A DNA stretch of 64,000 nucleotides, from positions 434,001 to 498,000 of the forward strand of contig MU054466.1 of NCBI GenBank assembly GCA_013239625.1, written 5' to 3'. Position numbers and translations under genes: made by a program. Source of the DNA: Lama guanicoe (Eukaryota). Below, piece by piece: positions 29,402-56,750 of the stretch. The stretch's first letter is position 1. The number at the start of each line of letters is the position of its first letter. Below the pieces are notes generated by a model. It was given only the letters and a program-made list of their open reading frames with translations, had not been told where the DNA came from and searched no databases.

Positions 29402-29682
29402 GGCGACCCGAACCCCGATCCGACGCCGCGGCGGTCCCTGCTGCGAGCCGGCGCGCCCCCGACTTCCGCTTCCGCCTCCCCCTCGGGCGCGCGCCCGCGT
29501 ACGTCTCCGGGCGGGTCCGTGTGCTGCTGGGCGCCCGTTGGGCCGCGCCTGCTGAGTTGATAAGAGCCATGAACCAATGAGAAGGCAGGAGGTGAGGCCT
29601 ATCCAATGAGAGCGGGGCTGAGGGCGGGCCTTGCGTCGTCGCGCCGCCGAGATACGGGTGTCAGGTGAAGCGGGGAGCGGCG
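29402..29682. promoter_or_regulatory. Bidirectional CpG-island promoter HGS/ARL16
   Basis: Divergent ATGs at 29401 (-) and 29683 (+). Tandem ETS/GABP sites ACTTCCGCTTCC at 29462-29473; CCAAT boxes at 29574 and 29603; GC box. Confidence 0.85.
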
Positions 29683-31507
29683 ATGTGTCTCCTGCTCGGG
29701 GCCACGGGTGTCGGCAAGACGCTGTTGGTGAAACGCCTGCAGACTATCCTTCCGCGCCAGGCGGGCGGGGGAGGGGCTGGGGGACTCCGGGGGTAGCGCT
29801 GGTGGGAGCGGGGCAGGGGCCGCCCGGGGCTGGAAGCGTCAGGGCCACGGTCCACCTGGGGCGGGGGGCGCCCGGGGCAGGGTCGGGCCAGCGCTCCCTC
29901 CTCTGCCCGCCTCGGAGTCCTTGACCGCCTCGCACAGCTGAGCTCCCGGGATGGGAAGGGCGACCTGGGCGATCCTCCCCCGACGCGGCCCACGGTAGGT
30001 GCCCGCCCTTCTGCAACTTTGGGAGAAGTGAGTCCCCCTGTGCGGTTAGGAAAGCGCTTTGGGTTCTTTTAAGTGGAAGCTGGAGTCCGACGGTCGGTGT
30101 GTTCAGCACAGCCCTTGGGAGGTGGTGGATGTCACCGCAGGGAGTTTGGCTTCGACGGGACAGAGTCGCAGGGGATCCGGAGCCGCCCGCCTTTCACCAC
30201 CGTTCAGACTGCTTTTGCTGCTGGCCGCAGAGGGCGAATCCCGGTCGTGGGGTCCTGGACTTCTGGGAGCATCTTTAGGTCTCCTCTGTCACGGGTTCTG
30301 CCCTAGGGCCTGCGCACTCGAGATGGGGGTAACTCGCAGTGTAAAGGCTGGGCACGTTGCTATCCAGGAGTTCCCCGGGAAAACGCTTGTGTTGGCCTCT
30401 CTGCAGCCTGGTTTCTTCCACAGGTGGGCACCAACCTTACGGACATCGTGGCCCAGAGCAAGATCACCATCCGGGAGCTGGGGGGTTGCATGGGCCCCAT
30501 CTGGCCCAGTTACTATGGAAACTGTCGCTCTCTTCTAGTAAGTCGTCCTCTTTTGAACTTCCTTTGGGGAAGTATGTCTCCATTCCAGCATTTAATCCCC
30601 AATTTCTCTATTTTTGGGGTAGAGTTTGGGTTCCTGGGTGACTGTGCTAGTCAAGGAAACAGGGCCCAGGCTAGAGCTGCTTCCCTCTGGGGCTGCAGCC
30701 TGATCCTGCTCCCAAGCCAACATAAAAGCTCCAGGACGGCTTGTTGAGGTCAGTGTTCATTCTCTGTAGGTACCTGTGACGTCCACTCACTGCCTTGCTG
30801 CGGTGATTGTGTTTTTTCATTTTATGTTTAAATTATATATTCCCCTGGTTCGTCCCGTTCTGTCAAGACCTGTGCCCAAGATTCCAGGAGAAGTAACCTT
30901 CCTTGGAGAAGTAACGGCCCCACGAGTAGAGAGACTTCCGTGGAGGTGCAAACAAGCAAGCAACGCCATCCTCCTGCAGGGCTCGCTCCCCTCTGCTCCT
31001 GCCTGTCCCCAGCCAGGCCTGTGATTCCAGGAGAGGAGAGCCCGCTGCAGGAGCCTAATTAATCTCCACTTCCTCTTTCCCAGTTCATGATGGACGCCTC
31101 GAACCCCACGCAGCTCTCTGCCTCCTGCGTGCTGCTCCTGGGTCTCCTTTCAGCAGAAGAGCTTGCAGAAGCATCAGTTCTGATACTCTTCAATAAAATG
31201 TGCGTGTCCGTGAGCCGAGAGGGGTGCGGGGTGCCCCAGGGCGGAGCTCCCGTGGGGCAGCCGGGAGGGTGGCTTGTGGGGGGTTGGGGTGGGCTCCTGG
31301 CAGCCCACCCTGACGGGGCGCTTCTCTCACTCCAGTGACCTGCCCTGTTACATGACCACGGAGGAGATGAAGTCGTTGATCAGGCTCCCAGACCTCGTTG
31401 CTTGTGCCAAGCAGAATATCACCACAGCGGAAATCAGCGCCCGGAACGGCACTGGCTTGTTGGAAGTGCTGCGTTGGCTCCAGGACACCCACAGAGCTAA
31501 CGGTTGA
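29683..31507 (+). CDS. ARL16: ADP-ribosylation factor-like GTPase 16, 173 aa, 5 exons
   Basis: Exons: 29683-29743, 29936-29994, 30424-30537, 31084-31199, 31336-31507 (522 nt). MCLLLGATGVGKT (P-loop)...PTVGTN...RELGG...FNKIDLP...EISARNGTGL. Intron 1 is U12-type (see findings). Confidence 0.93.
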
Positions 31508-55882: not shown

Positions 55883-56750
55883 TACACGAAAACATGCTCA
55901 AAATCACTGATTATCAGAGAAATGCAAATCAAAACTATAATGAGGTATCATGTCACACCAGCCAGGATGGCCATCGTTCAAAAGTCCACAAATGACAAAT
56001 GCTGGAGAGGCTGTGGAGACAAGGGGACCCTCCTCCACTGCTGGTGGGAATGCAGTTTGGTGCAGCCACTGTGGAAAACAGTGTGGAGATTCCTCAAAAG
56101 ACTAGGAATAGACTTACCATATGAACCAGAAATCCTGCTCCTGGGCATATATCCAGAAGGAACCCCATTTCAAAANNNNNNNNNNNNNNNNNNNNNNNNN
56201 NNNNNNNNNNNNNNNNNNNNNNNNNNNNNNNNNNNNNNNNNNNNNNNNNNNNNNNNNNNNNNNNNNNNNNNNNNNNNNNNNNNNNNNNNNNNNNNNNNNN
56301 NNNNNNNNNNNNNNNNNNNNNNNNNNNNNNATTTGCAGCAACATGGATATCCCTGGAGAATGTCATTCTAAGTGAAGTAAGCCAGAAGGAGAAAGAAAAA
56401 TACCATATGAGATCGCTCATATGTGGAATCTAAAAAGAAAAAACAAACCCCATAAATATAAAACAGAAACAGACTCACAGACATAGAATACAAACTTGTG
56501 GTTGCCAGGGGGGCGGGGGGTGGGAAGGGACAGACTGGGATTTCAAAATGTAGAACAGATAAACAAGATTGTACTGTGTAGCACAGGGAAATATATAAAA
56601 GATCCTGTGGTAGCTCACAGTGAAAAAAATGTGACAATGAATATATGTATGTTCATGTACAACTGAAAAATTGTGCTCTACACTGGAGTTTGACACAACA
56701 TTGTAAAATGACTATAACTCAATAAAAAAAAAAGTTAAAAAAATAAAAAT
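55883..56750 (+). mobile_element. 5'-truncated L1 (ORF2 C-terminus, 3' UTR, poly-A) with 15-bp target-site duplication
   Basis: ORF 55922 reads [71 protein letters not shown] (55868-55882) / AAAACCAGGCCTTTA (56751-56765). Confidence 0.92.
56176..56330. other. Assembly gap (155 N) inside the L1
   Basis: Run of n characters. Confidence 0.99.

Follow-up and report, generated by a model that had tools for sequence, protein, structure and literature searches.

Minor introns that begin with CT and end with AC are rare, but they have already been reported. A natural case is known from Trappc9 of mouse and rat (Lin et al. 2010, BMC Evol Biol 10:47); the corresponding introns of other vertebrates end in consensus dinucleotides, and in the two rodents a C as the first intron base (position +1) is tolerated in vivo. 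CU-AC is listed among the rare minor-intron termini in a 2021 review (PMC8199999), and 24 of the conserved animal minor introns (0.033%) in Table S1 of Larue & Roy 2023 are of the CT-AC type. In an engineered reporter, the CU-AC mutant of the P120 U12 intron gave the correct product through the minor spliceosome, although at lower than wild-type efficiency (Dietrich, Fuller & Padgett 2005, RNA 11:1430, as summarised by Lin 2010). Here we analyze a natural intron with the same pair of ends, intron 1 of ARL16, in a 64,000-nucleotide stretch of Lama guanicoe DNA (assembly GCA_013239625.1, contig MU054466.1, positions 434,001 to 498,000 of the forward strand), referred to below as the window and numbered from its first letter. 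We consider it very probable, from comparative sequence evidence, that this is a functional U12-dependent intron of the AT-AC class, that its first base changed from A to C in one old laurasiatherian fixation, and that its removal joins position 29743 to 29936.

U12-type motifs between CT and AC ends

Coding exon 1 of ARL16 (29683..29743, plus strand, as are all features of the gene) starts with the ATG at 29683, runs through MCLLLGATGVGKTLLVKRLQ (29683-29742), and ends on the A at 29743, which is the first base of the junction codon. Intron 1 follows at 29744..29935 (192 nt, 79% G+C). Its 5' splice site, CTATCCTTCC (29744..29753), matches the U12 motif TATCCTT exactly at +2 to +8 and departs from RTATCCTT only at +1, where a C takes the place of A or G. 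Toward the other end, the branch-point sequence TCCTTGAC (29918..29925) fits the U12 branch site, defined here as TCCTTRAC located 10-15 nt from the 3' end with no long pyrimidine tract required; its presumed branch A at 29924 lies 11 nt from the intron end. The branch-point sequence is followed by CGCCTCGC and the terminal AC (29934..29935), behind which an AG at 29936-37 completes an AAG (Lys) codon and opens exon 2 (29936..29994). This exon continues with LSSRDGKGDLGDPPPTRPT from 29938 and is followed by a GT-AG intron with the donor gtaggt at 29995. Joining 29743 to 29936 thus keeps exons 1 and 2 in frame, with the mRNA sequence ...CTGCAGAAGCTGAGC... and the peptide KRLQ-K-LSSRDG. The pair CT-AC is noncanonical, yet it is a documented rare U12 subtype.

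To what extent could this arrangement be fortuitous? On both strands of the window (128 kb), TATCCTT occurs twice and TCCTTRAC five times, and the shuffle frequencies of the motifs put the chance of finding both in register at a single frame-closing junction at about 1e-8. Among the enumerated frame-keeping donor/acceptor pairs, only 29744/29935 combines both U12 motifs in register with KRLQ-K-LSS. Given that the motifs are rare and that both stand in register at the very junction that yields the ARL16 protein, we do not consider the match a product of chance. The remaining matches to TATCCTT and TCCTTGAC in the window were inspected and are chance occurrences in noncoding DNA; the second TATCCTT is a tTATCCTT within an A-rich region.

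As judged from these motifs, ARL16 intron 1 is a U12-type intron with CT...AC ends. This is what an earlier note, written from the letters of the window alone, had proposed, and motifs, spacing, and frame closure all agree with it; on rereading the window, the positions and letters that it gave for the intron were correct throughout. Its statement that use of the CT donor together with the AG at 29936-37 would shift the frame also holds by frame arithmetic, the predicted product being LQTELPGWEGRPG...; in the view of the note, the site might for this reason limit ARL16 output.

Orthology to the minor intron of human and mouse ARL16

ARL16 is listed among the genes with a minor intron (Olthof et al. 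2019 supplement; MIDB), and loss of the minor-spliceosome protein ZCRB1 in human cells altered its splicing (PMC13216214). Instead of scoring the window intron with position weight matrices or intronIC, we set its 5' site and branch 12-mers against those that Olthof 2019 scored for human and mouse. In that supplement, mouse Arl16 intron 1 (122 nt) has the 5' site AGA/ATATCCTTC (the slash marks the splice site) and the branch site TGGCCCTTGACC, while human ARL16 intron 1 (98 nt) has AGG/ATATCCTTC and GGGTCCTTGACC. The window intron reads AGA/CTATCCTTC and GAGTCCTTGACC. Its 5' site 12-mer therefore differs from that of mouse at +1 only, and its branch 12-mer, GAGTCCTTGACC, differs from the human GGGTCCTTGACC in one flanking base.

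The three introns also share their position and phase (after KRLQ plus one base), the 5' motif from +2 to +9, the core of the branch-point sequence (TCCTTGAC/CCCTTGAC), and the 3' boundary AC/AG, and all three are short and located in a CpG-island first-exon region (98, 122, and 192 nt). What sets the window apart is the C instead of A as the first base and the greater length of the intron. The last exon base is G in human (Glu at the junction) and A in mouse and the window (Lys). Since the introns occupy the same site and their 5' motifs differ only at +1, the window intron is, on this sequence comparison, the orthologue of a known AT-AC intron with an A-to-C change at +1. The proposal that the CT-AC intron was derived from an AT-AC intron in this way is therefore borne out by the ATATCCTTC of both the human and the mouse 5' sites.

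C at +1 across laurasiatherian mammals

Where an ARL16 sequence reads through the 5' splice site, the codon after KRLQ is made up of the last exon base, +1, and +2, so that the +1 base can be deduced from the residue: Thr (ACN) indicates A/C, Asn (AAY) A/A, Asp (GAY) G/A, and Pro (CCN) C/C. We used the 43-residue read-through open reading frame (ORF) of the window (29665-29793) and a bovine-type read-through ORF (P0009) as search queries. The 54 read-through or mismodeled ARL16 sequences comprise 31 distinct tails, of which 20 are C-type (19 with Thr, 1 with Pro) and 11 are A-type (Asn or Asp). C-type tails have Thr or Pro directly after KRLQ, followed by IL(P). Two hits were unrelated to ARL16 and were ignored, namely, a bacterial dehydrogenase that clustered with P0001 (P0008) and a 1102-residue protein (P0010). 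Exon 1 together with the 5' site was also sought in JGI metagenome contigs, in two scans with degenerate patterns, and no match was returned.

Named C-type sequences come from Bos taurus, Capra hircus, Muntiacus reevesi, Cervus hanglu, Phocoena phocoena, Lagenorhynchus albirostris, and Vulpes lagopus. A second camelid belongs here as well: the tail of Camelus bactrianus XP_074200095.1, TILPRQAGGIGAGGLRGY... (TILPRQAGG..), is nearly identical to the read-through of the window. Unnamed C-type ORFs include a pig-like one that reads LQ-P-ILPR, pangolin-like ones that start with MMCLLLG and cluster with Manis pentadactyla, mustelid-like ones that carry KRLL and the N-terminal extension of Mustela erminea, and bat-like ones with LSSQDG in exon 2. 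On the A side are Saguinus, Myodes, Trichechus, and Dugong according to their read-through codons and human and mouse according to the literature, together with further unnamed ORFs. One of the latter has a KRLH signature that it shares with Sorex alone, a hint that A at +1 is retained in Eulipotyphla. Primates, rodents, and sirenians have A, Euarchontoglires and Afrotheria having kept it.

Taken together, these codons indicate that C at +1 is the normal state in a large part of Laurasiatheria and is not private to this genome. The most likely history appears to be a single A-to-C change that became fixed early in Laurasiatheria, ahead of the divergence of cetartiodactyls, carnivores, pangolins, and bats, and that has been kept since. 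The novelty that the earlier note had implied for the C was consequently set aside, as orthologues carry it widely: the Thr or Pro codon of the named ruminants, cetaceans, and fox, and of the unnamed sequences, is at odds with a variant restricted to camelids. The rarity of the end pair does not amount to novelty either, given the CT-AC minor introns in Lin 2010 and Larue & Roy 2023. Cattle, pig, or dog ARL16 introns may even be members of the CT-AC class counted in the latter's Table S1, while our literature search found no paper naming ARL16 as a CT-AC intron. In Trappc9, the C was reported in two murid rodents, whereas in ARL16 it spans several mammalian orders and would have persisted for far longer. 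ARL16 intron 1 is thus an addition to a known rare class, notable mainly for its phylogenetic breadth.

A further change in the 5' motif was seen in two rhinolophoid-like bat ORFs (P0002 and P0021), which read LQ-T-I-F-Q, corresponding to CTATCTTY.., with T for C at +6 besides the C at +1. K nevertheless stands at the junction in two sequences that share the exon 2 signature of these ORFs, namely, a RefSeq model of Hipposideros and the transcript-like Logan ORF P0081.

Conservation of the motifs and probable use of the junction

The read-through sequences also allow the intron ends to be compared among C-type animals. Conservation in the C-type tails amounts to 90-100% over the three initial read-through residues, which cover +1 to +8, and from the fifth residue onward identity is down to 25-65%. 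At the other end, the string VLD-xx-AQ-LSS, which corresponds to TCCTTGAC, six bases, GCN, and C/AG, is common to all 12 distinct tails extending into exon 2. This invariant spacing implies that the distance from branch site to intron end is fixed, and the Q codon (CAG) across the intron/exon boundary of the read-through ORFs places a C as the last intron base in all taxa seen. A dead U12 intron would not be expected to retain a conserved 5' motif, branch site, and spacing.

We then compared protein models from the databases with the window exon by exon. The alpaca (Vicugna pacos) model XP_031531781.1 (P0078, 173 aa) agrees exactly with the window peptides of exons 1, 2, 4, and 5 and of the first part of exon 3, and reads KRLQKLSSRDG. 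This agreement places the window in a lamine camelid or a very close relative. The exon 1 peptide is identical in the Vicugna pacos and Camelus RefSeq ARL16 proteins; the Camelus proteins differ from the window in a few residues, and their intron 1 is about 6 nt longer. The K junction is found in RefSeq models of Camelus dromedarius, C. bactrianus, C. ferus, Bos, Bubalus, Monodon, Cervus elaphus, several bats, felids, mustelids, and bears, a list in which C at +1 is established for part of the species only (bats and felids stand there without a species-level check). Pig provides an independent view of the same cut: its last exon base is C, its genomic ORF reads Pro (C/CTATCC), and the models of Sus and Phacochoerus read LQ-Q-LSS, where the Q (C+AG) matches the CT-AC cut C/CT…AC/AG. 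Similarly, full-length pangolin-type ORFs (P0132 cluster, 2.8-3.8 kb Logan contigs) read K, while the matching genomic ORFs P0001 and P0139 read Thr; the former are most likely assembled transcripts. RNA runs hold 24-34% of the words of a 2.2-kb stretch of the gene, which is about its exonic share. From these models, we infer that the junction from 29743 to 29936 is probably used in this animal, and the motifs suggest that camelids depend on U12 for it.

Several points weigh against this interpretation. The +1 base of the orthologues is read from protein codons rather than from orthologue DNA, and the bat, pangolin, mustelid, and pig genomic ORFs were assigned by shared peptide signatures rather than by name. 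Support for the base at 29744 and for the junction comes from other assemblies and from gene models, some of which may have been built by homology. Moreover, a newer alpaca RefSeq model, XP_072795946.1 (P0147, isoform X3), reads KRLQ-Q-LSS instead of K; given the A at 29743 in the window, this Q needs either another cut or another allele with C at 29743. Alpacas may be polymorphic for K and Q at the position corresponding to window 29743.

Alternative explanations

One alternative would put the C at 29744 down to an error of assembly or sequencing, the true intron being an ordinary AT-AC intron; such an error might befall a single base in a CpG-island region of 79% G+C. However, the independent Camelus bactrianus assembly behind XP_074200095.1 has the same Thr codon within a nearly identical read-through, C occurs in 19 further distinct sequences from other taxa, and 93-98% of the stretch's words recur in DNA runs of four organisms, a figure that is not specific for the base. 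Because the C is found in so many taxa, including a second camelid, an error is extremely unlikely. We attach still less weight to the idea that CT...AC on the plus strand is in fact the GT...AG intron of a minus-strand transcript, e.g., an upstream exon of the divergent neighbor HGS. CT-AC is the reverse complement of GT-AG, and false CT-AC calls are known to arise in this way (Larue & Roy 2023), but here both U12 motifs lie in register on the plus strand, the intron ends close the ARL16 frame, and the intron corresponds in position to the human and mouse minor intron. On the minus strand, no gene model was seen, and the ORFs are only GC-rich noise. The chance of this explanation is minute.

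Other alternatives accept the C but move the cuts. Shifting both by 2 nt downstream would give an intron from AT at 29746 to AG at 29937, again of 192 nt, and the junction KRLQ-T-LSS (mRNA ...CAGACTCTGAGC...). Such a shift keeps the frame, AT-AG is a known minor subtype, and some pipelines model A-type orthologues in this manner (Asn junction in Loxodonta, Otolemur, and one Mus model). It would, however, put TATCCTT out of register (ATCCTTCC versus ATATCCTT), and it predicts Pro in pig, where the models read Q. LQ-T-LSS was found in none of about 90 spliced ARL16 models from C-type or other taxa, K being general, which makes the shift highly improbable. The alpaca Q raises the opposite possibility, namely, that both cuts fall 1 nt upstream (AC at 29743 ... 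CA at 29934); with the letters of the window, only this AC-CA cut can yield KRLQ-Q-LSS as in XP_072795946.1. Yet neither spliceosome is known to use AC...CA ends, the motif would no longer be in register, and the older alpaca model as well as every Camelus model has K. The Q is more simply explained by an A/C difference at the last exon base, of the kind fixed in pig (C/CTATCC), and we regard the AC-CA cut as very unlikely.

Finally, the minor spliceosome might fail on the C at +1 altogether and leave the site to a cryptic U2-type donor, TTG/GTGAAA (29728..29733), spliced to the AG at 29936-37, giving a protein that lacks VKRLQK. This pair is in frame, its acceptor has a pyrimidine-rich run and cacAG, and the Ensembl Bos (P0049) and Cricetulus (P0145) models are built this way, with GVGK(S/T)LL followed directly by LS... 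Nevertheless, every C-type taxon retains VKRLQ at the protein level and keeps TATCCTT, TCCTTGAC, and their spacing, which a dead U12 intron would not need. The same mismodeling appears in an A-type rodent, which points to a habit of the pipeline, and the RefSeq models read K. We therefore did not take the cryptic donor as a real site and think that there is very little chance of its replacing the U12 site.

Proposed splicing and possible consequences

If intron 1 is indeed spliced as a U12-dependent CT-AC intron, U11 and then U6atac would pair with the unchanged TATCCTT at +2 to +8, and U12 would pair with TCCTTGAC. The 3' cut would be set by distance, 11 nt past the branch A and behind the AC, and the mRNA would join the A at 29743 to the AG at 29936. 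The first and last intron bases interact at the second splicing step. As the P120 CU-AC mutant is spliced correctly but less efficiently, C at +1 is by analogy expected to be tolerated in ARL16, perhaps at a cost in rate.

It is tempting to speculate that such a cost has been put to use. ARL16 is a GTPase of ciliary traffic, and the C at +1 could be a throttle kept over a long time, which would make intron 1 unusually slow and frequently retained in cetartiodactyls, carnivores, pangolins, and bats. If so, ARL16 would be more sensitive to the activity of the minor spliceosome in C-type animals than in primates and rodents. We consider this scenario unlikely. The length of 192 nt means that retention of intron 1 keeps the frame, although in the window a single in-frame TAG (29794..29796) would end it. 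The frame is open in Camelus bactrianus (P0149) and Bos (P0161), and in two annotated isoforms, Camelus bactrianus XP_074200095.1 (265 aa) and Bos taurus UniRef A0A3Q1MD96 (253 aa), the retained intron adds a Gly/Arg-rich insert of 56-66 residues after helix 1 of the GTPase.

The remaining ARL16 exons are ordinary in structure. Exon 3 (30424..30537) lies between GT-AG introns and is followed by exon 4 (31084..31199) and by exon 5 (31336..31507), which includes the stop codon; the five coding parts sum to 173 codons plus the stop, and all introns other than intron 1 are GT-AG. In intron 3, just 5' of exon 4, the window reads QEPN*SPLPL at 31056-31063, whereas the read-through of the Camelus ferus/Vicugna isoform X3 models reads …QEPNLHFLFPSS, a difference that about 4 additional bases (TAAT) in the window intron would account for, i.e., a small indel between assemblies. 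Elsewhere, positions 56176-56330 of the window are a run of 155 N.

Annotation of the intron and its meaning for minor splicing

The earlier note had also expected automated annotation to mismodel the intron. For NCBI this does not apply in camelids, where RefSeq gives the K junction, but Ensembl and other pipelines either impose GT-AG or GC-AG ends or carry the reading frame on into the intron. Thus, the UniRef/Ensembl model of Bos (P0049) uses a GT...AG pair and drops VKRLQK; Bos mutus (P0038) uses a different GT...AG pair; the Bos taurus TPA (P0039), Capra (P0051), and Muntiacus (P0046) models have GC...AG ends and read 'TILP/SRDG'; Phocoena (P0063) reads 'TILPRR/LSS'; Cervus hanglu (P0050) skips exon 2; and Vulpes lagopus (P0015) is a read-through. 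In sum, many non-NCBI ARL16 models of ruminants, cetaceans, and a fox are wrong at intron 1, in the region corresponding to window 29728-29942. Sirenian RefSeq models, with A at +1, carry a low-quality mark or read through.

Such models may propagate. The cataloguing of minor introns first sorts introns by their end dinucleotides (Olthof 2024 methods), and catalogues that draw on this annotation may miss the ARL16 intron or score it as lost in the mismodeled species. Read mapping is exposed as well: seen from the other strand, CT-AC ends look like GT-AG, and STAR codes them accordingly, so that in unstranded data ARL16 junction reads may be assigned to the wrong strand. In practice, pipelines that require GT-AG, GC-AG, or AT-AC ends mismodel ARL16 in many laurasiatherians. 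For the biology of minor splicing, ARL16 intron 1 would constitute a natural test, run over tens of millions of years and in several mammalian orders, suggesting that the minor spliceosome tolerates a pyrimidine at +1 provided that the other bases of the 5' motif, the branch site, and its distance from the intron end are left intact.

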